IMG/VR virus record: IMGVR_UViG_3300024999_000030
Coordinates: 268,731-332,730 of that record
Length of the DNA: 64,000 nt
Strand: one strand, 5' to 3'
Of this stretch, positions 43,867-64,000 are shown one piece after another. Both the position numbers and the translations under genes were made by a program. A model generated the notes under the pieces. That model saw only the letters and a program-made list of their open reading frames with translations. It was not told where the DNA came from and did not search any database. Numbering within the stretch: position 1 is the first letter of the stretch; each line of letters begins with the position of its first letter.

Positions 43867-46800
43867 ATGGCTTTCACCCTGTATTCCGCTAAAGGTAAAG
43901 AAAAGGAAACTAAGACACCTAAAGGCCTAGAGGAAGTTGAAACTTTATTTCCAGGCCAGGGCTCTCTTCAGTCCGCACAAACCGCTCTGCAGGCTACCCC
44001 TAAAAAACCTAAGGCCGAAAAGAAAGAGCTGGTAAAATCCAAGGGTAAACCAAAATTAACAACTAAAGAATCTCCAGAGGCACTTGATTTAGAGGAATCT
44101 GAGCAACCAGAAGATACTTCTAGTTCTTTGGCGGAAACTTTTGAAAAAGCGGAATCGATTACCAGGAAAAAGGGACCATATAGTTTTAATGCTAACTCTC
44201 AATATGAAATTGATACGGACCCGTATTATAGAGTATTTGAACATCGTGGTAAAACTATTATTTCTAGTCAGCCAGACACATATATCGTTATGGATTATAA
44301 AACCGGTTCTTATAATGTGGGATATAAACTTGGGGATGGATCTGTATCTTGGTCTAGATTAACTTCACGCAGTAAAGTTTTAGTTGCTAAAATGGTTAAA
44401 GCTTTGGAAAATGTACCAAGTGATCCAGAAGCAATCAACAATCCCAATGAACCTCAAGGGTCCATGGATTGGGGACAAAGACTCGGAAAATTCTTACACC
44501 TCACTAAACGCGCAGTTGCTTATGGTAATGCTGCTATCTTTAATATTTATATTGCGTCTGGTGAAGGAATTATTCCAGAACCAGATTGGCAAAATAAAAC
44601 TTTTGTAAAATCTGGCGAGTATTATAAGCCGGTTGGGGAAACTTGGGAACCAGAAGAAGCCTTTGTGTGGTATAAGGTTATAGCTTCTGTTTTAGGAACA
44701 CCACAAGAGTGTTTACTTGGAATGGCTAAGCATCGTGGAACCTCTACATTTGACATATATATTGCTGATGTAGACGGTTCAAATTCTCATAAAGCCAGAA
44801 TAGCTGATATAAAATTGTTTAATTATATTTCTGGTGATCAAATTGATATCACGGAAATTAATGATTATTATGAAAAATTTTCCAATAAAGAATCAGCCAA
44901 GCAAGTTGTTTCGGCAGACACAATTGCTACAGATCTTGCCACTGAAGAGGTTAACAAACTTGATTCTTCTACATTCTTCTTTGTTGATGGAAACGCCCCC
45001 AAAAGAATTATAACAGGAACTAGATATGAAATTTTAAGAGAAGGAAGCAAAGCATATATTAAAGCAGCTAGTGGTCCAGCTAAAGCGTTTCATTCTGATC
45101 TTAATTTAAGAACAGCTTTAAATGCTGAATCTATTCCCCTTTCAGAAATAGACCAGGTAGCCAGAATCACCAATAGAAAATCAGGTTTTTACCATGCTGA
45201 TATGAAAGCGAAAATGGAAAATGTAATAGCCCAAGGACACGCTGTTCAGTTTGAAATAGGGTCTATGGGAGACGATGGGACTTTTTATCCAACAGGTAAA
45301 GATGAAGACGTTTTCTGGGCAATCATTCCTACAGGTAGGGATTTTTATATGGAGGTGTCTAAGATTGAAGGTGGTTCTGCTTCTATTACTGCTGACACTA
45401 AAACATTGGAAATGGTGTCTACCTCCCCTGCAAGTCCAGATCAACTTAAAGTAGTGTCTAAACTTATTAGTTCTGTGTATCCGGTTTTCTCTAAAGAAAC
45501 ATATGGGGATGAGGCCCTTAGAGAGCAATTCTCATCGTTATTAATTACACCCCCACCCAATCCATTATATGGTTTTGATTTAACTTCTAAGCATAAACAA
45601 TCTAAAGAATTGCTTTTATTATTTATAAATTATATGTTTAATAATTTAGAAGCTAAATTAACTAAAGACACTGATTATGCAATTACAAGTAAAGAAAATG
45701 TGCTCGCTAAAGTAGATTCTTATTTAGGTAGAGTCACTAAATTAGATGCAGATAGCTTAGCACAATTGTTTTTTGGATCTCCTATAACTCATATTAATGC
45801 TGATTATATTGATAAATTTTATGAAGATATAGTGGGCGCAGGTGCCGATCAAGACTTAGCCTCCACCGAAGAGGGTTTAGGTCAACTTCGCCGCCGTGGT
45901 AAATTTGTAGATTCATATATTCAAAGCCCCATGATAGGGCAGCAAGAAGCGGGTAAATGGTTTATTAAGGCTGTGGAAGCAGTTACTATTGAACCCAGTG
46001 GTATATATGTTATTGAAAAAACTAAACATGGTACGACTAAGAAAAAACAAAATATCTATTTAGCTGAAAGAAATCTTGATTTTGAAAGTGGTACAGACAC
46101 TAGTCGTTTACCTTTTGGTGCTGTGTCTTTCAGTATGATAGATTTTAGAACTGGAAATATAGTCGCCAATGTTATGGCTAAAGAATCCGGTAAATATAAT
46201 TTTCAAGAAATATCTAAAGATGATTTTATTAAAGCATTTTACTCCAGTAGGCCCACTCAAGAGACGCTTGCTCAACGCTTAACTTCCGATCTGAAGGGTA
46301 TCGGATTAACCACGCCTAAAGCAAAAACCGTGTCTAAGCAATTGGTTGGTCAATTAGCAGCCTTATTATCTGACCCAGAAATTATTGCTAATATTCTTGG
46401 TGTTCCAGAAGAAGATGTAGCAACCTGGTTACACGGCCCCGATAAACTAGATGAAAAAATTCTTGCAGAAACCATTGCGTATTTTTCTTCGTTGTTAGGG
46501 GAAGATAAATACATGGGCCCATCCGTGGCCCTAGAATTAGAAAAACTAGTTTCGCAGCTCACGACTAAAGCTAAAAAATTTAATGCTAAAGATTTTATAG
46601 AATCAGCTCCAACAATTGCTGCTGAACTTATGCTTATTGTTTTGAATAAATTACGTGGGACTGACCTTATGTATAAGGTGGCTACTGAGGCCCGCAGGTC
46701 CCTAGACGCTTACTATAATAATACTGGTACTGCCGCATTTGTTAAGGTGTCCACTGGCTTATATAGTGGTCCATGCGCAGTTTTTTCTGATAAAAAAGAT

Positions 46801-49800
46801 GAAAGCAAAATTATTCTTTATCAGGAAGGTAGAATATACAATATAGATAGTGAGGATGCAAAAGAAAGTTTAATTACAAATACCATATCTAGTAAAAATG
46901 TATTTTATGTTGCCTCTATGGGGCAAACGGCAGTAAAAGCTGATGTGACTATGGTTGATAAAGCTGACCGTCTTGCAGCTGAAAATATAGCAATCAAAGA
47001 TATTATGACGTTTGTAACTAGTTATAATGGTGACACTATTTCTCCTGCGGATTTTATAGAATTTTTACAAACCACTATTGTAACTAAACTCAATGTTAAG
47101 CTTAGTTCTAATATGCTTAATAAAGTTGGGCGTATGGCGGCGATGCCTAAGGATGCATTTACACAAGAAAAAGCCCAACAGATTGCAAAAATATTTTCTG
47201 CCGCTGCATTTATTCCTAGAATTTTAGGGCATATTATGATTTATGATATTGCTGCTGGAAAATCTGGACAAATGCTTAAAATTTACAGAGATGTGGTTAC
47301 CACAAATGGATTCTGGGCACCAGTTCCAAGCGATTGGTCTGTGGATCCTAAGGTAGAAAAAAGTGGTATTGTGGTTTATGGAAATTCTAGAGAGTCTTAT
47401 ATTAAAAATCTTATCACGGCCACTCGACCCGCTCCAGCGTTTGGAGATATGGAAACAACTATTGCTTCTATGGATAGAGATTGGGGTACTTCTCCAGAGT
47501 CTCAGGCAAAAGTATATGACTTTTTTAGAAAGGTTAACTATGTTTCTGGCATGTGTTTAGCTAAAGTGGTTTCCTTTGAGGATGGTGAGGAATCAGGTGA
47601 ATCTGAATTTCAAAACATTCAAATTGTAAATCAAAAAATTCAGACTTTCTTTATGGGTCCTAATAAGAAATCATTAGCTTCTAATCTTAGATATGTAATT
47701 GAATCTGGACATAAGAGACTTAGTAAAGATGTAAGACTATATGACCCATCCACTCTCGCCAGAAAGGTGGCATACTGGGCCATGCAGAATTTACATATCT
47801 CAGCTTCGTTTATTGGGCTGTCCTCTAATAGTACAGTAGAATTTAATCGATCTTCTTTTGTGGATTTGATTAATGCATACTTAGCAATGCCAGAAAAATT
47901 CAAAGCGGATAATTTATATACCGATGCTTTGTATGCCGCTATTAAGGTTTCTTTGAGTCGAGCGATGAATATTATTATGACAGATCGCCGTTATCAATTA
48001 GAAAGAGAGACTATCTTAGCTAGAATTCCAGAAGAATATCTTAGTGACGATGCGGTTAGTCGCAGCAAACAAGTTGAATTGGTTCAATATTTAACTCAAG
48101 CGCTTATGTCTTATTGGCTTTCTAATCTCGCAAGCATCTCAGCTCCATCTGGTAAAATGAAAGTAAATCAAAAATTTACTGGTTTTGAAGATTTAGTCCG
48201 TGATCCAGATGAAGTGGTAGCGGGTTTAGCGGCTGCTTCACCAGAATATCTTATCGGTATGTTGTTGTGGACTTTAGCGGATAATAAAGTACAACGTGCT
48301 GTTCGTTCATCCCTGGGTGGCGCCAATACTGGTATTACTTTCCAGGATACTATGCAGCCCGATAAACTCACATTAACCCAGATGCAACAGTTACTTCATG
48401 AAACGTTAGGTTCCTTTACTGTGTCACTTATGTCTATTTTAGATAAGTCTGGACATATTTTAAATAAATATTATAACGTTGCTATTTTAAAAGATTATAA
48501 TAAATCTAGGATTAAGAATAAAGATTTAAGTCTTAGAGCTTTTGCTGAGGCAACCATTAATGATGAATATAGGGCTGCTAAAATTGCCGAAGCCTGGTCT
48601 CCTGCATTTGAAGAAATGAAAACAAGGGCTACGGTTGCAGAATGGAAATCATCTGGTGTGAAGGGCGTTATGAGTCCATCTTTTGCATTGGCTTCTAAAT
48701 TTGGGGCAGGGGCAGTAATAGCTCAAGGTATGAGTGATGAATCTCATGTGAATAATGGTGTACCATTCCTCATTACTGCAATGCAAGCAATGACTAAAGA
48801 TCATAGATTCGCTTTTAAGATGACTGCTGATATTCTAGAACATGAAGATTTTTCAGAAACGCTTCCATTTGCAGCCCAAGAGATTAAACGAATTCTAGAG
48901 GCTGGTAAATTTAAGTATAATTATAAAAATAAATTAGACGCAGATAGTCTTAAAAAATATTTATTGAATGTTTATTTTGAAATCAGACGTCGTAGACAGG
49001 GTGCTTACTATGTTCGGCCAGAAGACTCTATGGCAACGATGGAGGGCCAGACCACTGCATTCGAGGAAGTTGTAAAGGAATTAGCAAATAAAAAAGATGG
49101 TCTTACTAAATATAGTTTTGGCGACATTCAGAAGGAATTTAATTTTGCTTCGCTTCCGCATAAAACTAAAAAAGAATTTACACCTATGGATAAATTCTTT
49201 GAGGTGTTTAAGAAACAGTTAACAGAAAGTGGAATGAATCATATGGGTGCGTTTTCTTCTATCATGCAAACGTTTAATTATAGTAAAAATTACGCCTCGT
49301 TTCCATTATTAGTTTATATGATGAAAAGAAATCTTGGTACTATTCCCAATCTTTCTGATATTCAATATAACAAAGATTTCTTTGAAACAATGGGCCGGGC
49401 TCTTGCAGCCACAGTTATGGATGTTTCTAAACTTAATACAATGACTGATGCTGCAGCTAGGGGAATGCAAAAAAGCTTTGTGTCTGGTGGTTTAAATATT
49501 TCGACTGTCATTTCTAATATTATGGCATTTGTATATTGTTTAAATAATCCAGATATTGGGCAACATCTTAGGGAATTAAATAAACTTGATTCAGCTGGAA
49601 GAGTATCTCTTAACAGGAAAATGATGTCTACTCGATATGGTATTTCATCTCACGCTAAAGAAGTATTAGGCGTTCCTAGTGTGTCTGTTTCACCGGATTT
49701 TGTTGGTATGTTAGATCAAAGTAGGGTAAGTAGTCTAGCGGAAGCAATTAGAGCCTTTAGTAGTAGGCATCAAGATATTGAAGATGTAGTAGACTACATT

Positions 49801-52800
49801 CATGGTGAAGCTACGTATATTCCAGAAGAAGCTAAAAAACTATTTGAAGTCTTCGCTTCTATGGCAGGGCACCAATTAAATTCTACATCTCAGGCAGTAA
49901 GAATTGGAAACGATGAAGCTATTGATAAAGTTACGTCTGGAAATTATGATGCTTCATCTGAGCCCAGTCACAACGCATTTGTTGTGGATGCTATAAATCA
50001 AATTAACGAAAATCTGGTTTATAATGTTTTTGGGGCCACTGAAGCTAAGATGAAGTTTAATCCTAAAAAACCATTTGACACCGGGGCCATTCCAGTAGAT
50101 CAATTTTCTAACTTTACAGATGCTATGAAGGCCGCCATGAAGGCTCATAATATTAACACTTCTGATGATTTAATCGGAATGATTTATAATACCCGTAGAG
50201 ATTTTCAGTCTAGTGGTGAACAGTTGTATGATATTATTTGCAAAATGGTAACGTCAATGTTACCAAAGCAAGCCCCAGATTCAGGGGCTATGCCAGCTTC
50301 TCCCTCTTCAGACGCTGCTTGGAACTTCTATGTAACTCAAGATGGCGTTGACTCACTAGTACCAAAAGCCCTTAAAGATGAAATTATTAATGCGGATGTA
50401 GAAGATATATCTGTAGCTGATGTATTAGCAATGGCAGAAAAGGTTTTTGAAACGCTTTCTATTAAATTAACGGGTAAGGCATTAGATGATTTAGCTACAG
50501 TAAAGCCTAAACTTTCTATTGGACAAAAGGCATTAGATAAAAACTTTTCTACGTTGAAGGCTGATATTTCAAACTTAATTAATAATAAAGAAGAATTAGG
50601 CGATGATGAATACGCCACACAGCTTTATAATATGTATAGTAAAAATAATCGTCTTGTGGTGTTAAAATTTGTGGCCGATAACTACCAAACTATTGGAACA
50701 ACTCCTTTGGAGGCTTGGGACAAAATTGCCGCCATCATGAATAATAAATTATATTTAACGGATAAGTCTTCACAGACTATCGTAGATAAATTTAAGAAAT
50801 CTTTACATAAAACAGGGGGTAATAAAGAATATCCATTTGCGTCCACTGGCTCCTTTGATAATGAAGTTCATGATTTAGCATATCTTGCCACAGAAATAGC
50901 TATTACTTTATCATTACCTCATGGTAAAGTTACTGAAACATTTTCAGTTCCCGTGGACATTCAAAACAATCAAATGGACGTACAACGATATTATCGTACG
51001 GTAATGGCTACAAATGCAGAAAAACATGTGGCCACATTAAGAACAGATATTAAATCATTAACTAGTAAATATCAAGACTTGGTAAATGGAGCACCTGTTA
51101 AAGATACGGTGTTAGCCCTATCTAAAATTATTTTAGATAAGAAACACCGCTTAGATTTAGAGGGAGTGGCGTGCAAGACTCTCATTAGGCCTATGCCGTT
51201 ATCAGAAAGAATTGAAACTAATGTTTTAGAAGATGTTGCTAAAACAGTTTTAGTTTTACCAGCCCGTGCCCTTAAAAGCAGTGATGATAAAACTACCCAT
51301 TATATTGTTATGCAAGATTTAACTTTTAAAAAAATTACCTTAATTCCATATAAAAATCTACCCACAGACATAGCAAAAGAGATGAAAGACTCAGGAAGCG
51401 TCGTAGTGGAATTATATCCTGGAGCTGAAAGCGATATAGCAGTTTTACCAAGTGTCATGGGTTCTGATATTTCTTCAGCCTCTTCAGCTGTGGCTTCACA
51501 TCTCAACGAAGCCTTGGGTGATAAAGTTCCCACAGACAAAGCAGAAGCCCTTCTCGTTTTATTTGGCTATCAACTTAGTTCAATTATAATGGCATTAACC
51601 GATACGCTTACGACTTTTGAATCATATCGCATGGCTATTATTAAAAGAATGGGTTTCAATAGTGGGTCTTATGCGGTTATCAGTCCTTCATTATTGGAAA
51701 TCTCAGAAACAGTTCCAATTATTCAAAAGAATGATTTACCTGTTTCTTTTAAAGAGTTTTTATCTGACATGGACATGGAAGATCAAAATATATATTTAGA
51801 TAAAGAATCTTTGAAAGATTTAGTTAAAACTGTAGTGCCAGTTAAAGTGTTAAAGGTAGATAGGACTTTGAGTGGACGAAAGTGTGCTATTGTTTCTATA
51901 GACATTCCAGGTGAGGTGATTAAATCAAAAAGTGTCCCAACTGTACAAAAACCACCTAGCAGAAGAATTATTGCAAACGTACCATATGAATATTTATCTT
52001 CAGCCGCTGCGGAAAAAACATTACCTGGAGTATATTTTGCTGTTAGGGAAAGGTTAATTTATTCACTCAGTCATCCTATTCCCGGTAAAGAAGCCCTTCT
52101 TAAAAAATTTGAAATCGGGCCAACAGATCCAGCTATGATAAATACTACATGGTTACGTAAACATTTGAATGGTATTCAACAAGCTGAAGAAGCTGGTGCC
52201 ATATTACCTGGAACCACAACCCAAGCTAAACGTCTTTTGGATCGAAAGTTTGCTGAGCCGGCGCGTACAATTGAGCCTTTAATTGGTAAACTTTCAAAAT
52301 CTCCAGTTATTATTGCGCGTGATTTACACTCAACCGTTTTGGATGTGTTAAAGAGAACTTGTAAGGGAGATGAACAAGCATCGATGGATATAGATTCGCA
52401 CTTAGCTCCAATTATGCCTAAAATGTATTCTCTTACACCAGTTAAAACCAGAACATTGGCAAATGCATCTGGACAAAAAAGCATTCGTTTTGATAGTGGA
52501 TCCGAATTGGTTAATGCATATTGGTTGCCTTCTACAAATGCTGACGCTGATTTTCAGAAGAATATCGGTAAATATTATGATACGGCTAGGGCGATATACG
52601 GGGTGAAGAAAACCAAATCTGCTGGCCTTATCAAAGCTATGTCTGAGGCGACGATTATTGCTCCCGCTGAAAAAGCGTTGGCTTTATTAAATGAGTCTTT
52701 ATTGGTTGCAGAAGAAGTAAACGACGATTCAATGATTAAAATTTTATCCGCTGCAATTGAATCCATCCAAGATCATTTTTCTGATGATTTAGTTTCCAAT

Positions 52801-55800
52801 CAATCTTTAGTTCTCTTGACTAGGGCTCCTCTTGGTGATCGCTCTATTATTATACCAGTAAGTAAAAATATGTTTTGTTCATTACAACAGCTGATGGCTT
52901 ATTATACAAACTGGAGTACATTAAAGAGTAAATTAGTTATGACTCCAAAGCTAGCAGAAGTAATGTCCGGCGGCCAAGAACTGCCATGCTCATTTACTTA
53001 TTTGGAATCGTATGCGGATGGTAGTGAAATCAAAGTGCGTATCGCAGATATGGGAGATGGTTTTAAAGTGGTCCCCCATAAATTCATTTTAAAAAGCCCC
53101 ACCACTGGAGCTGATTTAGGTGTAGCAACTGGCGGGTCTAACTCATATTTAGAAGATAGCTCTGCTAGAGCAGATAAAGACTTTGTTAAATCTAAGGACG
53201 ATAAGGCGATTAAGGTATTAAACCCATCTGCCCTTTCTCGTATTAGAAATGTAAATGGGCTTAGATTAGTTGTCTATAATGGTCAGTCTTTTACTAAGAA
53301 ATTCGAAGCACCTATTTTACCAAATGCAATTAGTGGTATTAAAATTAAATTTGAACCTCAGCGTGCAATTGTAATGTCTGGAGATAGATACGAAATAGTA
53401 TCTGATGCTTCTGTGTCTCTCAATCCAGACTTTTCATTGCGGGCAACCAGAGAGCGCGGTAAACTGAAAGGCGGTGGTTACGACCTTAAGGTTAGCGATA
53501 GTCGAAGTACATTTGTTAGAACTATTTCTGGTGACGAGCAGCTTAAACGTATTAGAAGTATGATGGATAGGGATGCCACTATTTATGAAATACTGGGTGC
53601 TGAATTTGGCAACTTGGGCGATATTATTAAAGAACAAATGAATCAAATTGCCATTACACAGAAAGCACATCGCACTGCCGAACTAAGGCAAGAACAGGGT
53701 GGAGATGCAGATCTCTGCGCAGATTTAAGGGCCCTTGGTAGTAAGTTCCAAACCAAAGGTCGTGGATCAGATGAGCGCGTTATTGAGATTCCAGACAATA
53801 CAATTTTTGATGATTTAAATAAACTTAAATGCATTGGTATTGGTACTAAAATACAACCCCTAATCCACCCCACGATAGAGGGGGTGGAAGATACTCCCGC
53901 AGTGAATGCTTCTATAGCATTAAATACGATTGATGTGGTAAAGCGTGCTAAATTCAAGAGGGCTGGATTTGCTTCGGGTGGGGGTGTAAATCTTTTAAAC
54001 GATTTAATTGGTAAGAGAAAACCAGGCGCTACATCATCCCCATTACAGGCTTCTTTACAACATGTATACAATACCGTTCTTAATGATGGATGGAATGAAT
54101 TTATTAATAAATATGAAATGTCTGCAAGTAAACAATTTGCTAAGAAAAATCCATATATAAATTTAATCGATAACTATAAGAAACTATTAGAAGCTAAACA
54201 AAATGGAGTTTCTCTTGGGACTGAAGCCGATAGGCAATTTAAAGCTTTGAGTGCTGTAATTGGCGCTGGTAAATCTTATTTAAATATGTCTATGTCTAAG
54301 GTAGAAGAACTAATTAAAGACGATACCCATAAAGCTGTTTTGTCTAGGTTCCACGATATTACAGACATAGAAAAAATGATTACGAATAGCCATAAAGATG
54401 GACGAGGACAACACGCTTCACGTGTTTCAAAACAATTATTTCTTTTGGGATCCATTCTAGCTTATTATATTTATTTAGCTAAACATGAACCAACAGTAGA
54501 GTCAGCCGATGCTCTTAAATGGTACGAGCGTTTTCTTAAAACTGAAGCCCAAGGAATAGTATTTAATTTTATTAAGCAATTTGGGTTGTTGGATGCGGGG
54601 GCTAGATTGGGTATCACGGGCGTTAGGGGCAAATCTAAGAATTTATTTATTGCTAAATCACCAGATCTTGCAAACGTTACTCGGCAGCTAGAGGAAAATA
54701 TTAAAATCATAACCGATAGTATTGCTGCTAACGATGGCACAACTGGCTATGTAATGGGATTATCTAATTTCTTTGGTTTGATGCCTTTAAGTAATCGTGT
54801 TTTAATTAATGTATTGTTTAAAGATATTTCTCCCTTTGGTGTGAAACGGGATGAAAAAAATCCACAGGTGAAAGAGGTATCTGAAGCATTAAATAATTTA
54901 TTTCAAGAAATAATGCTGGGAGATAGTTCTGTATTACAATTGGACGCTAGCACTAATATGGCTATTGGTGAATTACCAGCCACATTTCTTCCAGAAAATT
55001 TCCGTAAATTATTAGCCATTGAAGAGGAATATATTCCAGAAGAAGAACTAGAAATGGATGAGGGTGAAGATTTAACACCTGAACAAATTGAAGCTTTGGG
55101 GCGCAATGCCGATATGTTAATTATACAATTTAAGAAAGCTATGCCTATCCGATTTGCTAAATTAATATCTAAGCCTCGAAAACTTAAGGTGACCACTATG
55201 AAATGTAAAACTTTTGGAGATACAGACTTAGTTACAGAACCATCAAGTCCCATGAATATTCCAGAAGATAATAAACGTAGACAAGAACAAGCCTCGTCTA
55301 AACTGCTGTTGTTTAAATATGCAGATGAAAATGTTATTGATGCTCAAATAGAAGAATTACGCATTGTGTTAGCTGAAAACAATAAAAACATGCAAGAAAT
55401 GAAAGAACAATGGACTAGGGTTCTTGTTAATTCTATAGACTTAAAAGACATAGATGAAAAAGAAAGAATCAAATTTGCAGAAGACACATTTAAAGATTTT
55501 ACTAAATTTATTTATAAGCGTGATAATCTTTATAAGAATGTGGATCAATTACCAGCTATGCTAGAAAAATTGTATGAAATTATATCTGGCGGTCATAAAT
55601 ATGATAAAATACCAACAGCTTTTATGCAAATGTTTTTTAGCTATAGGTCTCCAGCGTATAGTTTAATGCGTAGTATGGTGTCGTTATTTAATGACAATAG
55701 TTTTCTAGCTGAACAAAATGCTTTAATTGAAGATGTTATTTCATCTAATAGTTTAGATACATTTGAAGATGGAAATAAATCGATGGAAGGAGAGGATGCG

Positions 55801-55833
55801 CCAGAAGGCACTTTAATGAATCCACACACCTAA
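43867..55833 (+). CDS. Giant hypothetical protein (3988 aa), candidate internal/ejected virion protein
   Basis: Uninterrupted 11.97-kb ORF with GGAGG RBS and a near-match late motif CTATTATAA at 43845. No catalytic motif recognised. Confidence 0.9.
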   Translation: MAFTLYSAKGKEKETKTPKGLEEVETLFPGQGSLQSAQTALQATPKKPKAEKKELVKSKGKPKLTTKESPEALDLEESEQPEDTSSSLAETFEKAESITRKKGPYSFNANSQYEIDTDPYYRVFEHRGKTIISSQPDTYIVMDYKTGSYNVGYKLGDGSVSWSRLTSRSKVLVAKMVKALENVPSDPEAINNPNEPQGSMDWGQRLGKFLHLTKRAVAYGNAAIFNIYIASGEGIIPEPDWQNKTFVKSGEYYKPVGETWEPEEAFVWYKVIASVLGTPQECLLGMAKHRGTSTFDIYIADVDGSNSHKARIADIKLFNYISGDQIDITEINDYYEKFSNKESAKQVVSADTIATDLATEEVNKLDSSTFFFVDGNAPKRIITGTRYEILREGSKAYIKAASGPAKAFHSDLNLRTALNAESIPLSEIDQVARITNRKSGFYHADMKAKMENVIAQGHAVQFEIGSMGDDGTFYPTGKDEDVFWAIIPTGRDFYMEVSKIEGGSASITADTKTLEMVSTSPASPDQLKVVSKLISSVYPVFSKETYGDEALREQFSSLLITPPPNPLYGFDLTSKHKQSKELLLLFINYMFNNLEAKLTKDTDYAITSKENVLAKVDSYLGRVTKLDADSLAQLFFGSPITHINADYIDKFYEDIVGAGADQDLASTEEGLGQLRRRGKFVDSYIQSPMIGQQEAGKWFIKAVEAVTIEPSGIYVIEKTKHGTTKKKQNIYLAERNLDFESGTDTSRLPFGAVSFSMIDFRTGNIVANVMAKESGKYNFQEISKDDFIKAFYSSRPTQETLAQRLTSDLKGIGLTTPKAKTVSKQLVGQLAALLSDPEIIANILGVPEEDVATWLHGPDKLDEKILAETIAYFSSLLGEDKYMGPSVALELEKLVSQLTTKAKKFNAKDFIESAPTIAAELMLIVLNKLRGTDLMYKVATEARRSLDAYYNNTGTAAFVKVSTGLYSGPCAVFSDKKDESKIILYQEGRIYNIDSEDAKESLITNTISSKNVFYVASMGQTAVKADVTMVDKADRLAAENIAIKDIMTFVTSYNGDTISPADFIEFLQTTIVTKLNVKLSSNMLNKVGRMAAMPKDAFTQEKAQQIAKIFSAAAFIPRILGHIMIYDIAAGKSGQMLKIYRDVVTTNGFWAPVPSDWSVDPKVEKSGIVVYGNSRESYIKNLITATRPAPAFGDMETTIASMDRDWGTSPESQAKVYDFFRKVNYVSGMCLAKVVSFEDGEESGESEFQNIQIVNQKIQTFFMGPNKKSLASNLRYVIESGHKRLSKDVRLYDPSTLARKVAYWAMQNLHISASFIGLSSNSTVEFNRSSFVDLINAYLAMPEKFKADNLYTDALYAAIKVSLSRAMNIIMTDRRYQLERETILARIPEEYLSDDAVSRSKQVELVQYLTQALMSYWLSNLASISAPSGKMKVNQKFTGFEDLVRDPDEVVAGLAAASPEYLIGMLLWTLADNKVQRAVRSSLGGANTGITFQDTMQPDKLTLTQMQQLLHETLGSFTVSLMSILDKSGHILNKYYNVAILKDYNKSRIKNKDLSLRAFAEATINDEYRAAKIAEAWSPAFEEMKTRATVAEWKSSGVKGVMSPSFALASKFGAGAVIAQGMSDESHVNNGVPFLITAMQAMTKDHRFAFKMTADILEHEDFSETLPFAAQEIKRILEAGKFKYNYKNKLDADSLKKYLLNVYFEIRRRRQGAYYVRPEDSMATMEGQTTAFEEVVKELANKKDGLTKYSFGDIQKEFNFASLPHKTKKEFTPMDKFFEVFKKQLTESGMNHMGAFSSIMQTFNYSKNYASFPLLVYMMKRNLGTIPNLSDIQYNKDFFETMGRALAATVMDVSKLNTMTDAAARGMQKSFVSGGLNISTVISNIMAFVYCLNNPDIGQHLRELNKLDSAGRVSLNRKMMSTRYGISSHAKEVLGVPSVSVSPDFVGMLDQSRVSSLAEAIRAFSSRHQDIEDVVDYIHGEATYIPEEAKKLFEVFASMAGHQLNSTSQAVRIGNDEAIDKVTSGNYDASSEPSHNAFVVDAINQINENLVYNVFGATEAKMKFNPKKPFDTGAIPVDQFSNFTDAMKAAMKAHNINTSDDLIGMIYNTRRDFQSSGEQLYDIICKMVTSMLPKQAPDSGAMPASPSSDAAWNFYVTQDGVDSLVPKALKDEIINADVEDISVADVLAMAEKVFETLSIKLTGKALDDLATVKPKLSIGQKALDKNFSTLKADISNLINNKEELGDDEYATQLYNMYSKNNRLVVLKFVADNYQTIGTTPLEAWDKIAAIMNNKLYLTDKSSQTIVDKFKKSLHKTGGNKEYPFASTGSFDNEVHDLAYLATEIAITLSLPHGKVTETFSVPVDIQNNQMDVQRYYRTVMATNAEKHVATLRTDIKSLTSKYQDLVNGAPVKDTVLALSKIILDKKHRLDLEGVACKTLIRPMPLSERIETNVLEDVAKTVLVLPARALKSSDDKTTHYIVMQDLTFKKITLIPYKNLPTDIAKEMKDSGSVVVELYPGAESDIAVLPSVMGSDISSASSAVASHLNEALGDKVPTDKAEALLVLFGYQLSSIIMALTDTLTTFESYRMAIIKRMGFNSGSYAVISPSLLEISETVPIIQKNDLPVSFKEFLSDMDMEDQNIYLDKESLKDLVKTVVPVKVLKVDRTLSGRKCAIVSIDIPGEVIKSKSVPTVQKPPSRRIIANVPYEYLSSAAAEKTLPGVYFAVRERLIYSLSHPIPGKEALLKKFEIGPTDPAMINTTWLRKHLNGIQQAEEAGAILPGTTTQAKRLLDRKFAEPARTIEPLIGKLSKSPVIIARDLHSTVLDVLKRTCKGDEQASMDIDSHLAPIMPKMYSLTPVKTRTLANASGQKSIRFDSGSELVNAYWLPSTNADADFQKNIGKYYDTARAIYGVKKTKSAGLIKAMSEATIIAPAEKALALLNESLLVAEEVNDDSMIKILSAAIESIQDHFSDDLVSNQSLVLLTRAPLGDRSIIIPVSKNMFCSLQQLMAYYTNWSTLKSKLVMTPKLAEVMSGGQELPCSFTYLESYADGSEIKVRIADMGDGFKVVPHKFILKSPTTGADLGVATGGSNSYLEDSSARADKDFVKSKDDKAIKVLNPSALSRIRNVNGLRLVVYNGQSFTKKFEAPILPNAISGIKIKFEPQRAIVMSGDRYEIVSDASVSLNPDFSLRATRERGKLKGGGYDLKVSDSRSTFVRTISGDEQLKRIRSMMDRDATIYEILGAEFGNLGDIIKEQMNQIAITQKAHRTAELRQEQGGDADLCADLRALGSKFQTKGRGSDERVIEIPDNTIFDDLNKLKCIGIGTKIQPLIHPTIEGVEDTPAVNASIALNTIDVVKRAKFKRAGFASGGGVNLLNDLIGKRKPGATSSPLQASLQHVYNTVLNDGWNEFINKYEMSASKQFAKKNPYINLIDNYKKLLEAKQNGVSLGTEADRQFKALSAVIGAGKSYLNMSMSKVEELIKDDTHKAVLSRFHDITDIEKMITNSHKDGRGQHASRVSKQLFLLGSILAYYIYLAKHEPTVESADALKWYERFLKTEAQGIVFNFIKQFGLLDAGARLGITGVRGKSKNLFIAKSPDLANVTRQLEENIKIITDSIAANDGTTGYVMGLSNFFGLMPLSNRVLINVLFKDISPFGVKRDEKNPQVKEVSEALNNLFQEIMLGDSSVLQLDASTNMAIGELPATFLPENFRKLLAIEEEYIPEEELEMDEGEDLTPEQIEALGRNADMLIIQFKKAMPIRFAKLISKPRKLKVTTMKCKTFGDTDLVTEPSSPMNIPEDNKRRQEQASSKLLLFKYADENVIDAQIEELRIVLAENNKNMQEMKEQWTRVLVNSIDLKDIDEKERIKFAEDTFKDFTKFIYKRDNLYKNVDQLPAMLEKLYEIISGGHKYDKIPTAFMQMFFSYRSPAYSLMRSMVSLFNDNSFLAEQNALIEDVISSNSLDTFEDGNKSMEGEDAPEGTLMNPHT

Positions 55834-57831: not shown

Positions 57832-60648
57832 ATGGACGATGCTAAATTTTACCAGGGTGACGTTAAAGGTTTCAACCCATTGGACGAGCTTTCTCCCGCT
57901 CGTCGTGACCAATTAAAAGGGGGGCCCAGTAAAAAGTCTACCGCCGGAGTTAAAACTGGTGATATTACTTTAAATATGCCCGCCGCCGCAGTTGATTCAA
58001 CCAAGTCTTTATCTGCTTATAAAACTGCTTCAGAAAACGGTGGAGGCGGATCTGTTAGAACAATTCCGAGAGTTTATTCACCTCTATTTGAACTTTCTAA
58101 TTTACAGCTTCCGAGGGATAGGCGTACTTTAAATGCGTGGTGTCGACATTTTTATTCCACTCATCCTCTAGTTAGAAACTGTGTTAATCTTCATGCAACG
58201 TTTCCAATTTCTAAATTTGAAATCACTTGTGATGAAAAAACTATTGAAACTGAAATGAATGAATTAGCTGAAGACATGAGACTAATTCATGTGTTGTATG
58301 GTGTGGCACTGGTTTATTGGATGTTGGGGGAAGCTTTTCCTTATGGAGATTGGAACGATAATGATAAGACTTGGCGCCGATGGGTTGTTCATAATCCTGA
58401 TTATGTAGATGTTAAATATTCTGCCGTTACGATGGAACCACTTATTGCATTGCAACCAGACGATACCCTTAAGCGATTAGTTAAAAGTAATGACCCTAAG
58501 GATAAATATATTAGAGCTACATTACCAAAAGAAATAGTATATTATATTTCTAGAGGTATGAATATTCCTTTGGATTCTTTTAATGTTACGCATGTTAAGT
58601 TTTTATCTGAACCATATGATCATCGTGGTACAAGTATTATTGCCTCTTGCTTTAAGGATTTAATGTTATATGATTTACTTAGAGAAAGTGAATATGCTCA
58701 AGCAGCCAATCTTATTAATCCATTAACTCACGTGAAGTTGGGTGATCCATTAGGTCGTTGGCGCCCTTCCGATGAAGACTTGGCTCAATTTAGAGACATT
58801 TTTGTTGATTTGCAATTTGACCTTGATCCTAAATTAATTACACATGGCGCTGTTCAAATTGAAAAGGTCGGCAATGCGGGCGGAATAATTGACACCACCC
58901 CCAAGCTTGATCGTATTATTAAAAATATTATGGCAGGTTTAATGGTTCCAGAGGGAGTTATTACTGGTGAAGGTCCAAATTATTGTTACGATGAAGAAAC
59001 AGAAACTTTAACTAAATCTGGATTTAAAAAATATAATGAAATTACTGACATAGATGAGATTGCTACGTTTAACCCCACCACCAAACTTATTGAATACCAA
59101 CATTATAATGAGAAGATTGTTAATCAATATGATGGGAACATGGTTCATTTTAAAACTAAATTCATGGATATAAAGGTTACCCCCAATCATAAAATGTATG
59201 TTAGGGATCGTAAATCTTTGGAGTGGGGAACCGTAGAAGCCTCAGATGTTAAGCTTAGAAGTAATATTCTAGATCATGGAGACTGGGTTGGCAATACCCC
59301 GTCTGTAATTGAATATGGTGGTTTTACTTTTACACCTAAAGAATTTATTAATTTAATTTTCTACACGTGGACCAGAAGTAGGGTAATCGAAGAAGCTGGT
59401 GAGAAAGTAATGATTTATAAATATGCTCAACGCGGTCCAGCAGTGGAATGGAAAGATGCCCTCGTGGTGCTTGGCGTTAAGTATGATGCAAAGTATAAGG
59501 GTTATGTAATGCGGGACCAAAACTTTATAAACCTATGTCAGAAAGAAATTAATAGTGAATTTGATCATTGGAAATTACCAAGATTAATTGGCGAATGGAG
59601 TAAACACGACATTTATGAAGTCCTCAATAGATTAGCGGGAAAACATGGCATTGCTAAAAAGAGTTATGTTAGTAGACGTGGTTTATTATTACGTGCTTCT
59701 TTTGCTTTATATTCTAAAGAATTGTTGGATTTTATTCAAGAACTATTCTTTAAGTGTGGATATTCTACTAGAATCGAAGCTGAATTTAAACCATGGAGAA
59801 ATAAAACTATTTATAGAATGAATTTTTCTCATGTTGCTAAACAGACGGCAAGAATTATTGACACTAGATCTAAGGGCAAGACTCGTAAAGATTGCAAAGC
59901 TGAAGTGCCCTACAATGGTATTGTATATTGTTTTGATGTTCCCCCTAATCATCTTTTTATCACTAGAAGAAATGGATTGGTTACTATACAAGGGAATAGC
60001 ACGGCTTCTGTGGGATTAGAAGTCTTACGTCAGAGATATTTAATGTTCCGAGACGAATTAGAACATTGGATTCGTAATAAGGTTATGAAACCAATTGCAG
60101 TGGCTAGAGATTGGACTGTGACCGAATCTAAACAGAAAAAATTAATTATTCCAAGAATTCAATGGAATAAACTTACGCTTAAAGATTTAAATGATTATAT
60201 GCAAAAGGTGGCAGAGGGACATAATACCGCTAAGGTTGTCTCACGCGATTCGTATTTAAAAAGCTTAGATTTAGACCCCGATGAAGAGCTTGAGAATAGA
60301 AGAAAAGAAATGATTGAAGATGCTATTCTTACAAAAGAAAAAAACATTCTTTATTCTCCCGCTTATACTTTATCTGAACTTCGTACGCTTAACACCGATT
60401 CTCTAATTGAAGATAGAGTTGTGCCTGGAGCTAATCAACCACCTTCTGGCCCTGGAGCAGGTGGCCAAGGTTCCCCAGATTTCTCTGGTGGTTTAGGTGG
60501 GTCTATGCCAGATTTAGGTGGTGGGCTTGGCGCCCCACCTGAAGGCGAAGCCCCACCTGGCGGCCCACCAGATATTGGTGGTCCTCCTGAAACGGGATCA
60601 CCAGCATCTCCTGGTGGCCCCCCGCCCCCCGCAGGGCCTCCTCAATAA
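57832..60648 (+). CDS. Portal protein containing an intein
   Basis: Follows terL. FYSTHPLVRNCVNLHATFP, RGTSIIASCFKDL, THVKLG, IMAGLMVP and IPRIQWNKL are portal-like, with a Gly/Pro-rich C-terminal tail. Confidence 0.85.
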   Translation: MDDAKFYQGDVKGFNPLDELSPARRDQLKGGPSKKSTAGVKTGDITLNMPAAAVDSTKSLSAYKTASENGGGGSVRTIPRVYSPLFELSNLQLPRDRRTLNAWCRHFYSTHPLVRNCVNLHATFPISKFEITCDEKTIETEMNELAEDMRLIHVLYGVALVYWMLGEAFPYGDWNDNDKTWRRWVVHNPDYVDVKYSAVTMEPLIALQPDDTLKRLVKSNDPKDKYIRATLPKEIVYYISRGMNIPLDSFNVTHVKFLSEPYDHRGTSIIASCFKDLMLYDLLRESEYAQAANLINPLTHVKLGDPLGRWRPSDEDLAQFRDIFVDLQFDLDPKLITHGAVQIEKVGNAGGIIDTTPKLDRIIKNIMAGLMVPEGVITGEGPNYCYDEETETLTKSGFKKYNEITDIDEIATFNPTTKLIEYQHYNEKIVNQYDGNMVHFKTKFMDIKVTPNHKMYVRDRKSLEWGTVEASDVKLRSNILDHGDWVGNTPSVIEYGGFTFTPKEFINLIFYTWTRSRVIEEAGEKVMIYKYAQRGPAVEWKDALVVLGVKYDAKYKGYVMRDQNFINLCQKEINSEFDHWKLPRLIGEWSKHDIYEVLNRLAGKHGIAKKSYVSRRGLLLRASFALYSKELLDFIQELFFKCGYSTRIEAEFKPWRNKTIYRMNFSHVAKQTARIIDTRSKGKTRKDCKAEVPYNGIVYCFDVPPNHLFITRRNGLVTIQGNSTASVGLEVLRQRYLMFRDELEHWIRNKVMKPIAVARDWTVTESKQKKLIIPRIQWNKLTLKDLNDYMQKVAEGHNTAKVVSRDSYLKSLDLDPDEELENRRKEMIEDAILTKEKNILYSPAYTLSELRTLNTDSLIEDRVVPGANQPPSGPGAGGQGSPDFSGGLGGSMPDLGGGLGAPPEGEAPPGGPPDIGGPPETGSPASPGGPPPPAGPPQ
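58984..59997 (+). mobile_element. Intein (338 aa) in the portal gene, with degenerate LAGLIDADG-type insert
   Basis: Block A CYDEETETLT, block B VTPNHKMY, block F/G VYCFDVPPNHLFITRRNGLVTIQGN, followed by Ser(+1). Confidence 0.9.
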
Positions 60649-61774: not shown

Positions 61775-62137
61775 ATGCGAAAAAATTTTAGTTTTAGTGA
61801 GCTACAAGGGGCCCTTCGCACTACCAGCCTCACCAAGACGGCGTCGGCACTTAATCCTGGGGAGATGTCTCCAGAACAAGCGCTTGAAAACATTTGCACC
61901 GTTGGTGATACGCTGGATGCCCATGGCCTAGAGCAGGAAACCGAGAAGCTCACAGCTTCTATTCAGGTTCTTATGTCTCTGATTAAGACTGCTGCTAAAG
62001 AGAACAGTTTTGAGATGACATTTAAATGTCCAGACTGCGGAGCCGAGATTGAAGCTGAAGTTGAGATTGAGGGAGATGGAGAAGGAGAGACCGAAGAACC
62101 CAAGAAGGAAAAAGAGGATGAGGGCTCAGAGGAGTAA
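61775..62137 (+). CDS. Hypothetical acidic protein with CPDC motif
   Basis: AAGGAG RBS. TKTA and IKTA motifs flank the central segment. Confidence 0.78.
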   Translation: MRKNFSFSELQGALRTTSLTKTASALNPGEMSPEQALENICTVGDTLDAHGLEQETEKLTASIQVLMSLIKTAAKENSFEMTFKCPDCGAEIEAEVEIEGDGEGETEEPKKEKEDEGSEE

Positions 62138-62140
62138 GTC

Positions 62141-64000
62141 ATGCTTATTAAAATGGGCGAAGCCGCAGGACCCTCTTCAGCTTTTCAGTTTGTTACTCCA
62201 GATGAGGCTCTTGAATCTCAGATAGTGAGTGAGCGGTTCGCAAAGTTTTTAGAAAAATTTAAATCCGCTGCTGATAATCACTCTATCAAGGGCCCTTCTG
62301 TCGCTCCGTATCGTAGTGATGATTTTCTTTATTTTAAAACAGTAATTATGCACGCAGCAGAACGATCAAATTTAGATAAAGCTGGAGAACTTACTGGAGA
62401 TGGTAAGTTTCTTATTACAAAAGAAAGTGATAAAGAAATTTGGCGTTGGACATCCGATAAGGGAATCTATCCATATGCAAATGCTAATGGAGATATTTTT
62501 CCAGAAGATGAGCTAGTAAAAGCGGCAAGTACTTGGGTTGGCAAGGGATTATATTGTAATCATCAATCTAATGATGTTGAAAAGCTTAGAGGTATTATTG
62601 TTGATACCATTTATGATAAGGCTTCCAAAGAATTGTGGGGCCTGGTTGCATTAGATAAGAAAAATTTTCCCATTCTTGCTGCTCAAGTAAAAAACGGTAC
62701 TATTCGTAATGTATCTATGGGGACAGCGGTAAAGCGTTCCTATTGTACGCTTTGCGGAAACATGGCCGTTGTGGAAGCAGATTATTGTGATTGTATTAAG
62801 CGGGGAATGAAAAATCGTGTAGTTGGTAATACATTGGTTGGGGAAATTAACGTTGGGCTGACTGGTGTGGAATTATCGTTGGTGGGTGTTCCCGCAGATA
62901 AAGATGCAACGATTAGACACGTCTATGCGAGCTTACAAGCCCAACTTGCAGAAATTAACGCAGAACTTAGTACCGAAGCTTCTGATGATGGTATACAGAA
63001 GGTTGCTGAGTTGAAAGAACAGATAGATGCAGTTGAGCGCACAATTAAGCGCGATAAGGAAAAAAAGTCTATAGGAGGCATTACAATGCTTACAGTTGAA
63101 GAGAGGGAAAAGCGTGCGGCAGATCGCCGTAAGATTCTAACTGCTTATATGCAGGGTACGACTGAACCCAAACCCGGCCAGGTAAATTATCCCCCTGAGC
63201 CTATGAATGAGCAGCTTCGTGGTGAGGAGCTTGCTAAATCTAAGAGAGAGGAGTCTGCTACCGCCCCCCAAATGGGTGATAAAGGTGGAGACCAGAAAGT
63301 GCGCACCGAGCAACAGAGGACTGTTGCTGAGAGAAAGACTGATCGTGAACAGCTTCGTCAGGCATACATGCAGGGTACGACTGAACCTACCCCAGGTGGT
63401 CAATATACTCCTGAACCTATGAATGAAAAACTTCGTAATGAGGAGTTGTCTAAAGCCAAGGGCGAAGAGACAAGCACTTGCTCTGCTATTAATCAGACCA
63501 ACTCTATTAAAGAGAAGTTGCAACGCGCCTCTTATCTTGGCGCACGATTTGTGTATGCTAAAGATGAAGAAGGCACTGTAATTCCTGAGCAGTCTTTTTG
63601 GGCTGTACACGCCACTGATGCTCCTCAGGCAGAGTTCACCGAGGAAAATTCAATTCTAACGGTATCCGCTTCTGAAGCCTATGGTAATGACCTCCATAGA
63701 GTAGCTAAAGATGACACTGGTAGTGATGATCCTGAGGGACGTACTAATTGGCAGTTTATGGCTAGTAAAGCTTATGGTAATGAACTCGTAGCTTTTATTA
63801 AGGATGCTGGTATTGACACCGTGTTTGCAACATTTAAAGTAGCTGAAGATCCCGCTCTAGCGGCTGGGTTGGAAGCACCGCCTGAAAGCGAGCCAATTTC
63901 TGGAACGGATCCTTTGGCTGAGCCTGAAGCTCCTATCTCTCCTGAGCTTCCCGGTGAAGAGGGATCTGAGGAAGATAAAGATAAGGTTACAACTAGCGAA
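62141..64000 (+). CDS. Prohead (capsid maturation) protease-scaffold fusion, 3'-partial, missing from the ORF track
   Basis: GAGGAG RBS, frame open for 620 codons to the window end. NANGDIFPEDEL, LYCNH (His141), VSMG (Ser192), CTLC..CDC, ELSLVGVPAD fit the HK97/assemblin-fold protease pattern. Confidence 0.88.
   Translation, partial: MLIKMGEAAGPSSAFQFVTPDEALESQIVSERFAKFLEKFKSAADNHSIKGPSVAPYRSDDFLYFKTVIMHAAERSNLDKAGELTGDGKFLITKESDKEIWRWTSDKGIYPYANANGDIFPEDELVKAASTWVGKGLYCNHQSNDVEKLRGIIVDTIYDKASKELWGLVALDKKNFPILAAQVKNGTIRNVSMGTAVKRSYCTLCGNMAVVEADYCDCIKRGMKNRVVGNTLVGEINVGLTGVELSLVGVPADKDATIRHVYASLQAQLAEINAELSTEASDDGIQKVAELKEQIDAVERTIKRDKEKKSIGGITMLTVEEREKRAADRRKILTAYMQGTTEPKPGQVNYPPEPMNEQLRGEELAKSKREESATAPQMGDKGGDQKVRTEQQRTVAERKTDREQLRQAYMQGTTEPTPGGQYTPEPMNEKLRNEELSKAKGEETSTCSAINQTNSIKEKLQRASYLGARFVYAKDEEGTVIPEQSFWAVHATDAPQAEFTEENSILTVSASEAYGNDLHRVAKDDTGSDDPEGRTNWQFMASKAYGNELVAFIKDAGIDTVFATFKVAEDPALAAGLEAPPESEPISGTDPLAEPEAPISPELPGEEGSEEDKDKVTTSE
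63086..64000 (+). CDS. Nested in-frame scaffold-like gene (internal start at Met316 of the protease ORF)
   Basis: AGGAGG at 63073-63078, 7 nt before an in-frame ATG. The product MLTVEEREKRAADRR... is charged and acidic. Confidence 0.65.
   Translation, partial: MLTVEEREKRAADRRKILTAYMQGTTEPKPGQVNYPPEPMNEQLRGEELAKSKREESATAPQMGDKGGDQKVRTEQQRTVAERKTDREQLRQAYMQGTTEPTPGGQYTPEPMNEKLRNEELSKAKGEETSTCSAINQTNSIKEKLQRASYLGARFVYAKDEEGTVIPEQSFWAVHATDAPQAEFTEENSILTVSASEAYGNDLHRVAKDDTGSDDPEGRTNWQFMASKAYGNELVAFIKDAGIDTVFATFKVAEDPALAAGLEAPPESEPISGTDPLAEPEAPISPELPGEEGSEEDKDKVTTSE
63143..63469 (+). repeat. Two ~36-aa repeats in the scaffold region
   Basis: AYMQGTTEPKPGQVNYPPEPMNEQLRGEELAKSKREE (63143-63253) and AYMQGTTEPTPGGQYTPEPMNEKLRNEELSKAKGEE (63362-63469). 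Confidence 0.9.

Follow-up and report, generated by a model that had tools for sequence, protein, structure and literature searches.

A huge-phage prohead protease gene with a conserved internal start and a putative nested scaffold-like product

Can a single phage gene encode both a prohead protease and, nested in frame within it, a second protein with the character of a scaffold, and does the protease free itself from such a fusion at an alanine? These questions are raised by an open reading frame (ORF) at the end of the 332,730-bp IMG/VR virus record IMGVR_UViG_3300024999_000030, from a groundwater phage, of which we analysed the final 64 kb (64,000 nucleotides, positions 268,731 to 332,730 of the record; hereafter the window). 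A first-pass annotation made from the sequence had proposed both, citing the nested protease/scaffold genes lambda C/Nu3 and herpes simplex virus 1 (HSV-1) UL26/UL26.5, which are indeed established. All of the features it listed were recovered in place, including ELSLVGVPAD, IRHVYA↓S (the arrow marks a proposed cut) and AGGAGG-N7-ATG. Overall, the protease and the internal start are well supported, the scaffold role is plausible, and the proposed cleavage is tentative.

The ORF starts at ATG 62141 on the + strand, as do all features of this gene given below by window position, and is preceded by a GAGGAG Shine-Dalgarno (SD) element (62129-62134), 6 nt before the ATG and overlapping the stop of an upstream 120-aa gene. 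It had been reported to lack a stop in the window; the frame is indeed open over 62141-64000, and it is cut also by the circular permutation of the record. The last 126 nt of the record (window 63875-64000) are repeated at record bases 7-132, the first 6 bases lying outside this terminal overlap, so the assembly, despite being classed as ‘linear’, is circularly permuted. Joined across the circular junction, the ORF has 947 codons, of which the first 620 lie in the window, and ends with a stop at L003:1114-1116 (the prefix L003 denotes bases of the record), giving a full-length product of 103 kDa. The join was confirmed by a 947-aa protein (P0002), identical over the query and called on a 332,739-bp contig, and by an independent 26.9-kb contig in which the entire gene is contiguous (L005:4001-6841).

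Residues 57-263 or thereabouts (62309-62929) gave a structural match to the characteristic assemblin/T4 gp21/HK97 protease fold (MEROPS S21/S77/S78 group). The candidate catalytic His141 (CAT, 62561-62563) and the candidate nucleophile Ser192 (TCT, 62714-62716, in VSMG) are invariant in alignments of 36 and 40 sequences. An hhalign comparison with T4 gp21, used only for the His/Ser register since it is statistically not significant (E 0.059, probability 0.9%), pairs His141 with His85 and Ser192 with Ser140, which we take to be the T4 catalytic residues, and agrees with the structural match. Inside the fold lies a C-x2-C-x10-C-x-[C/H] insert (Cys202, 205, 216 and 218; 62744-62794), in which Cys202, Cys205 and Cys216 are invariant and position 218 is Cys or His. 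The insert is kept in Bacillus phage G, Mycobacterium phage Alice and Rhodococcus phage E3, and a profile search of PDB sequences, which returned nothing significant for the protein, gave it a weak zinc-ribbon-like match; it is probably a zinc-binding knuckle.

Pfam did not yield the peptidase families named in the first-pass annotation: neither the entire protein nor its protease and nested portions had a meaningful match, and at E ≤ 1 there was none to S78, S77, S21 or DUF2213. In PHROGs, aa 116-252 matched the ‘head maturation protease’ family phrog_18299 at E 1.4e-13; a further match was to phrog_4523, ‘major head and protease protein’ (E 1.5e-4), while the best match was phrog_2774, a long family labelled ‘unknown function’ (E 5e-21). 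The gene lies between a 938-aa portal gene (57832-60648; phrog_16240, E 1e-56) and the major capsid gene, which the first-pass annotation had suggested seeking beyond the window and which is present at L003:6205-7221 (phrog_2522, E 6e-78); the same order is found in phages G, Alice and E3. The fold, the invariant His141 and Ser192 and this position together uphold the identification as a prohead protease. The gene's protein is almost certainly a prohead serine protease of the T4 gp21/HK97/herpesvirus-assemblin fold, its proteolytic activity being predicted.

The proposed second start is Met316 (ATG, 63086-63088). Seven nucleotides before it ends an AGGAGG element (63073-63078), which encodes part of a Gly-Gly pair, and the in-frame ORF that it opens (63086-64000 in the window) continues to L003:1116, co-terminal with the protease. 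Eight strong sites consisting of a 6-mer SD, a spacer and an ATG occur in the window; seven of them are at ORF starts, and the site at 63086, 316 codons into its gene, is the sole internal one. Met316 also marks the boundary at which an unalignable linker gives way to a conserved, twice-repeated module.

Comparison with relatives argues for a genuine start at this site. A Met aligned with Met316 is nearly universal in a 36-sequence alignment, where it follows Gly-Gly or Glu-Glu/Asp. Among the DNA sequences of 80 relatives the aligned ATG was located in 77, 5-20 residues before the first ‘AYxQG’, and SD elements were counted on 68 dereplicated relatives. An SD core (GAGG, GGAG or AGGA) is present at positions -18 to -4 in 66 of these 68, compared with 224 of the 2036 remaining in-frame ATGs in these genes (11%). 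Synonymous codons (GAGGA or GGAGG) keep the core at a spacing of 5-9 nt from the ATG: Glu-Glu/Asp is encoded by GAGGA in 49 of 50 cases at the site and in 260 of 1316 at other places (Fisher p 4e-32, without phylogenetic correction). The purine core persists across clades while the encoded residues change, so it is the nucleotides of the internal SD that are conserved. Predicted mRNA structure at the internal ATG is weaker than in the rest of the gene in 94% of relatives (mean z +1.35), and the internal SD is stronger than the gene's own (mean -7.8 vs. -6.2 kcal/mol, Wilcoxon p 3e-4), as would indirectly suit a shorter protein produced in excess over the protease. The signal is kept in 11 of 12 clusters at 70% protease identity. 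A promoter scan, which is weak evidence of its kind, found no promoter-like site just upstream of 63086, so a second product would come from the same mRNA, as lambda Nu3 does.

These observations make a functional internal start at Met316 likely. The earlier proposal of a nested gene has thus gained comparative support for its AGGAGG-N7-ATG, from the SD core, the synonymous codon choice and the weak local structure, while its scaffold role is drawn from position, character and analogy.

This gene organization is widespread. An exhaustive search with aa 1-300 returned 2058 cluster representatives at E ≤ 0.001, most of them 1000-1350 aa long with the protease at the N-terminus, and many family members are on contigs of 170-470 kb. 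A protease followed by a long C-terminal region therefore appears, from these sequences, to be the norm in a large clade of uncultured huge phages. A tblastn search of cultured phages gave matches restricted to the protease domain: gp19 of Bacillus phage G (aa 113-264, 43% identity), gp77 of Rhodococcus phage E3, which is annotated ‘prohead protease’, a Gordonia ‘capsid maturation protease’ and about 200 cluster C mycobacteriophages. Among cultured phages the protease domain is closest to phage G gp19, Alice gp90 and E3 gp77 (33-43% identity), and the Cys motif is common to all three.

Alice gp90 (1511 aa) and E3 gp77 (895 aa) are also long fusions. Unlike in the huge-phage clade, no conserved internal start is evident in these actinophage genes; an in-frame SD and ATG occur deep within each, at Met735 in Alice gp90 (L085:5872-10407) and Met449 in E3 gp77 (L086:4902-7589), which could be nested starts, although the GC-rich background scores similarly. 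In phage G the functions are split: gp19, of 300 aa, consists of the protease and a short tail, and gp21 is a separate gene. Phage G gp21 is homologous to the C-terminal helical domain of the family (hhalign probability 90.9%, E 1.2e-6), a domain that gp19 lacks. As gp21 matches this domain from a separate gene, the C-terminal part of the fusion is found elsewhere as a protein in its own right. The likeness is confined to the C-terminal domain in our searches: BLASTP of phage G gp20 and gp21 against the nested product gave no similarity, a profile of the N-terminal repeat module did not match gp21 (probability 1.3%), and PHROGs gave no match for the nested part, gp20 or gp21. The last 13 residues of gp19 align weakly with the family tail (E 0.012), a likeness that is suggestive only.

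One homologue of the protease-scaffold protein, the 949-aa P0060, is labelled ‘LAGLIDADG family homing endonuclease [Candidatus Portnoybacteria]’. Because P0060 carries intein Pfam domains, an intein appears to lie inside the protease gene of some relatives; the label may reflect hosts among bacteria of the candidate phyla radiation (CPR), or mis-binning.

The predicted nested product has 632 aa, a mass of 68 kDa and a pI of 5.0. Its N-terminal part holds two tandem copies of the module K.AY.QGT.EP.PG..Y ... K..L.RA (63128-63565), with AYMQG at aa 335 and 408, followed by a small, confident alpha/beta domain at about aa 463-567 (63527-63841), to which AlphaFold2 (AF2) assigned a pLDDT (predicted local distance difference test) of 83-88. 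The AF2 model otherwise shows long helices with disordered stretches between them, then a confident C-terminal helical domain (aa ~822-894), a further disordered stretch and a short terminal helix. An aromatic residue is found within the final four residues of 198 of 234 tails. The Lys/Glu-rich disordered part also contains a second Cys motif, C-KK-C-x10-C (L003:379-420, aa 703-716), which is not conserved in the family.

Where might the fusion be cut? The first-pass annotation had proposed an assemblin-like release site at Ala263↓Ser264 (62927-62932), at the C-terminal end of the folded domain and just ahead of a hypervariable acidic linker (aa 264-315, 62930-63085) that separates the protease from the internal start. 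In 281 dereplicated sequences Ala263 is conserved at 99%, with Ala (43%) or Ser (41%) at P1', a hydrophobic residue at P2 and I, V or C at P3, giving a consensus [I/V/C]-[I/V/L/F/Y]-A-[A/S] at the end of the last strand. This context fits the assemblin consensus, (V/L/I)-x-A↓S. In the structural model the last beta-strand spans aa 257-262, Ala263 is the next residue and confidence collapses exactly after it (pLDDT <50 at 264-268). Phage G and Alice share this Ala-Ser pair, while E3 has Val-Ser.

A second candidate emerged from a recurrent motif. In the family tail, K(84%)-x-A(85%)-[S/G/A] occurs at a median of 38 residues from the C-terminus, in a disordered stretch, with P3 and P2 that differ from those around Ala263; in the present protein it reads VKVA905↓S (L003:985-987). 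Counts over homologous sequences, which are not independent of one another, were compared with composition-matched shuffles, and the portal relatives were gathered by protein search. The motif is present in the last 60 aa of 170 of 229 scaffold tails (expected 27.7, z 28), in the 45 aa before the conserved core of 65 of 106 portals (expected 14.0, z 15; the motif Ala lies a median of 19 residues ahead of the core) and in 36 of 69 protease-scaffold linkers (expected 14.0, z 6.6). The two controls gave 94 of 233 for the tail helical domain (expected 68.4, z 3.9) and 62 of 64 for the interior of the nested product (expected 55.2, z 2.3). The head module of this genome contains 18 copies against 6.6 expected, and the rest of the window 29 against 24.6. 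Individual copies include Q-K-V-A↓E in the linker (Ala288, 62996-63007), an alternative candidate release site, and two candidate propeptide sites on the + strand, K-T-A↓S in the portal N-terminal region (YKTA66↓S, 58021-58032) and K-T-A↓S at aa 21-24 of the upstream 120-aa protein (61835-61846). These positions match what is known of giant-phage proteases, which cut the propeptides of the portal and of core proteins, along with their own C-terminal extension (PMC5694885, PMC10052503).

The invariance of Ala263 can be read quite differently, as that of the last residue of the terminal strand, with release taking place at the linker K-x-A (Ala288), after a Glu as in T4, phiKZ and SPN3US, or never, and we give this reading an even chance. 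Because Ala252 and Ala256 are also 100% conserved, structural conservation is an equally good explanation of Ala263; its P2 and P3 are hydrophobics of the type buried in strands, and E3 has Val in its place. Having no Lys at P3, unlike the recurrent motif, Ala263 was rejected as a member of the K-x-A family. Among giant phages, the relatives of this fold that have been characterised cleave after Glu rather than Ala, the C-terminal propeptide of SPN3US gp245 being removed after A-x-E (PMC5694885, PMC10052503). Against a purely structural role stand the Ala or Ser that follows in 84% of sequences, the collapse of model confidence at precisely this residue, the retention of Ala-Ser in phage G and Alice, and the fit to the assemblin pattern. 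The proposed release site thus keeps its near-complete conservation, its position at the exact domain end and its consensus, while neighbouring structural alanines are just as invariant. Cleavage exactly at Ala263↓Ser264 therefore strikes us as unlikely. K-x-A-[S/G/A] is the better candidate for a cleavage motif, judging by its distribution, and P1-Ala cleavage at K-x-A may be regarded as a tentative prediction with a little under an even chance.

The nested product could also be real and do something other than scaffolding, acting as an internal head protein (core or ejection) or as a portal- or capsid-associated factor that shares the targeting tail of the protease, with another gene between protease and capsid providing the scaffold. 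Several findings weigh on this side. The nested product matches no known scaffold family in PHROGs or Pfam, and a fold search with its model gave no match at E < 1, nor any PDB match for the alpha/beta domain. Among the unassigned genes between protease and capsid, any of which could be the scaffold instead, one encodes a 626-aa protein with 4 K-x-A motifs against 1.1 expected. In giant phages, many proteins inside the head have targeting peptides that are cleaved off (PMC5694885). Prediction of a complex between the capsid protein and the last 105 residues gave a score of 0.00, which speaks neither for nor against binding. On the other hand, a product nested co-terminally with the protease is the scaffold in every characterised case (lambda, HSV-1 and HFTV1, Haloferax tailed virus 1); the present one is long, helical, acidic and partly disordered, as scaffolds are, and it is conserved across the clade along with the capsid gene. 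A non-scaffold role is hence rather unlikely, and position, character and analogy lead us to favour, with some reserve, a scaffold or core protein.

Three points weigh against any second product: internal SD-like sequences can also cause pausing in translation, the relatives do not represent independent samples, and the sequencing runs holding the locus are groundwater DNA metagenomes only. That a single product is made from the first ATG, with the purine element and Met reflecting a pause or a constraint on the protein, has precedent in P2 gpO, a fused protease-scaffold lacking an internal start (as summarised in the HFTV1 preprint, bioRxiv 10.64898/2026.09.13.751334), and draws further on the distant actinophage members, which have no clear internal start right after the protease domain, but it is improbable given that synonymous choice preserves the SD core near a nearly universal ATG while residues vary, that structure is reduced there and the SD is at least as strong as the gene's own, that the other strong SD-ATG sites of the window are only at gene starts, and that phage G has the homologous C-terminal domain as a separate gene.

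We therefore return to a nested protease/scaffold gene as the preferred reading. One mRNA with two ribosome-binding sites and ATGs would yield a 103-kDa protease-scaffold fusion and a 68-kDa scaffold-like protein without the protease; with the second ribosome-binding site and ATG conserved on the same mRNA, two co-terminal proteins would be made. In the fusion, the hypervariable acidic linker would join the protease to the 632-residue helical and disordered acidic region. As the C-terminal helical domain and an aromatic-ended tail would be common to both products, the protease-bearing chains, as a minority, could co-assemble in the procapsid along with the scaffold-like protein, in the way known from lambda C/Nu3 and UL26/UL26.5. 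After assembly, the protease may release itself by a cut within aa 263-316, at Ala263↓Ser264 or at Lys-Val-Ala288↓Glu, and may also act at K-x-A-[S/G/A] motifs, trimming the tail of the scaffold (Lys-Val-Ala905↓Ser), the N-terminus of the portal (Lys-Thr-Ala66↓Ser) and small core proteins. In this model the start is seen at the sequence level, translation and co-assembly are inferred, and the cuts are suggested by motif conservation; as a whole we consider it moderately probable.

Several other features of the head module and the window were observed. The portal gene contains an apparent 338-aa intein (window 58984-59997, portal aa 385-722) that starts with CYDEETE and ends with ...IQGN↓S; without it the portal has 601 aa, like the 560-680-aa portals of intein-less relatives, and relatives' portals of 950-1380 aa have Pfam intein and LAGLIDADG matches. 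The portal C-terminus (window 60450-60648) is a Gly/Pro-rich, low-complexity tail of about 70 residues. Directly after the major capsid gene lie a GIY-YIG-type homing endonuclease (L003:7283-8281; phrog_314, E 4e-32) and a small HNH-like ORF (L003:8241-8507). With the portal intein, these two genes suggest that the head module is heavily colonised by mobile elements. The major capsid ORF opens at a GTG, whereas public calls start at an ATG 12 codons in (326 aa, P0233); compared with the 282-aa capsid protein of phage G, it is longer at the N-terminus by about 40 residues, among which a Tyr-Ala (aa 19-20 of P0233) is invariant. A 377-aa ORF further downstream (L003:8583-9716) contains CxxxCxxC (CAMYCRFC), read by eye and typical of radical-SAM (S-adenosylmethionine) aminomutase-like enzymes. 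Upstream of the head module is a 3988-codon ORF (window 43867-55833, + strand), and 58 of the 59 non-overlapping ORFs of the window and junction are on the + strand.

Reading the gene as a protease with a scaffold-like gene nested in it offers a concrete model of assembly for a major clade of huge phages known only from uncultured sources, and makes phage G gp21 a candidate scaffold in the one cultured megaphage. For annotation, it indicates that comparative data alone suffice to call a conserved internal start, through the synonymous-codon bias at the SD and local mRNA unfolding. It also predicts a specific P1-alanine cleavage motif, which, if confirmed, would bring phage prohead proteases and herpesvirus assemblin closer in evolutionary terms. 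A bolder proposal, which we consider doubtful, is that the huge-phage clade, with phage G and the cluster C actinophages as cultured outliers, carries a complete herpesvirus-style programme: a nested assemblin-fold protease/scaffold, specificity for Ala at P1 (K-x-A↓S/G/A), a cut behind the protease domain for release, another some 40 residues short of the shared C-terminus for maturation, and portal and core-protein propeptides trimmed at this motif as well. If true, alanine-specific assemblin-type processing would be older than the split between tailed phages and herpesviruses rather than a herpesvirus speciality, and the nested product would be the missing scaffold of the huge-phage lineage.

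Public annotation gives few hints of such a system: Alice gp90 is ‘hypothetical’, the best-matching long PHROG is of ‘unknown function’ and Pfam gives no match. In the open-access literature we found no paper on this arrangement, or on a scaffold or cleavage sites for this family, and phage G gp19 is only listed as a head maturation protease (PMC12484599).

Among known systems, T4 gp21, phiKZ gp175 and SPN3US gp245 share the fold, with aligned catalytic His and Ser, and trim portal and internal head proteins. They differ in cutting after Glu (L/I-x-E, A-x-E), in their length of 200-270 aa and in having scaffold genes that are separate or unidentified. To our knowledge, T4 gp21 and the giant-phage proteases lack the Cys-rich insert. 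SPN3US offers a parallel to the proposed release, its C-terminal extension being lost by auto-cleavage (PMC5694885, PMC10052503).

The nested layout has a parallel in lambda C/Nu3, where the scaffold likewise lies in frame within the 3' part of the gene for the protease, begins at an internal start of the same mRNA and is co-terminal. Lambda gpC is a ClpP/S49-type protease; the present one is of the assemblin/HK97 fold and has no sequence similarity to it. The lambda arrangement is described in bioRxiv 10.64898/2026.09.13.751334, as is HFTV1 gp17/gp17.5, in which ribosome profiling and mass spectrometry established that an in-frame internal start gives the scaffold. HFTV1 has an archaeal host and other initiation signals, and what was shown there experimentally is inferred here from sequence.

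The fold itself points to the herpesviruses, in which UL26/UL26.5 of HSV-1 and UL80/80.5 of human cytomegalovirus (HCMV) encode assemblin and scaffold. UL26.5 has its own promoter, whereas the shorter product here is predicted to come from an internal SD and ATG on the same mRNA. The phage protease further differs in its probable zinc-knuckle insert, and its recurrent candidate motif has Lys at P3 (K-x-A) in place of V or L.

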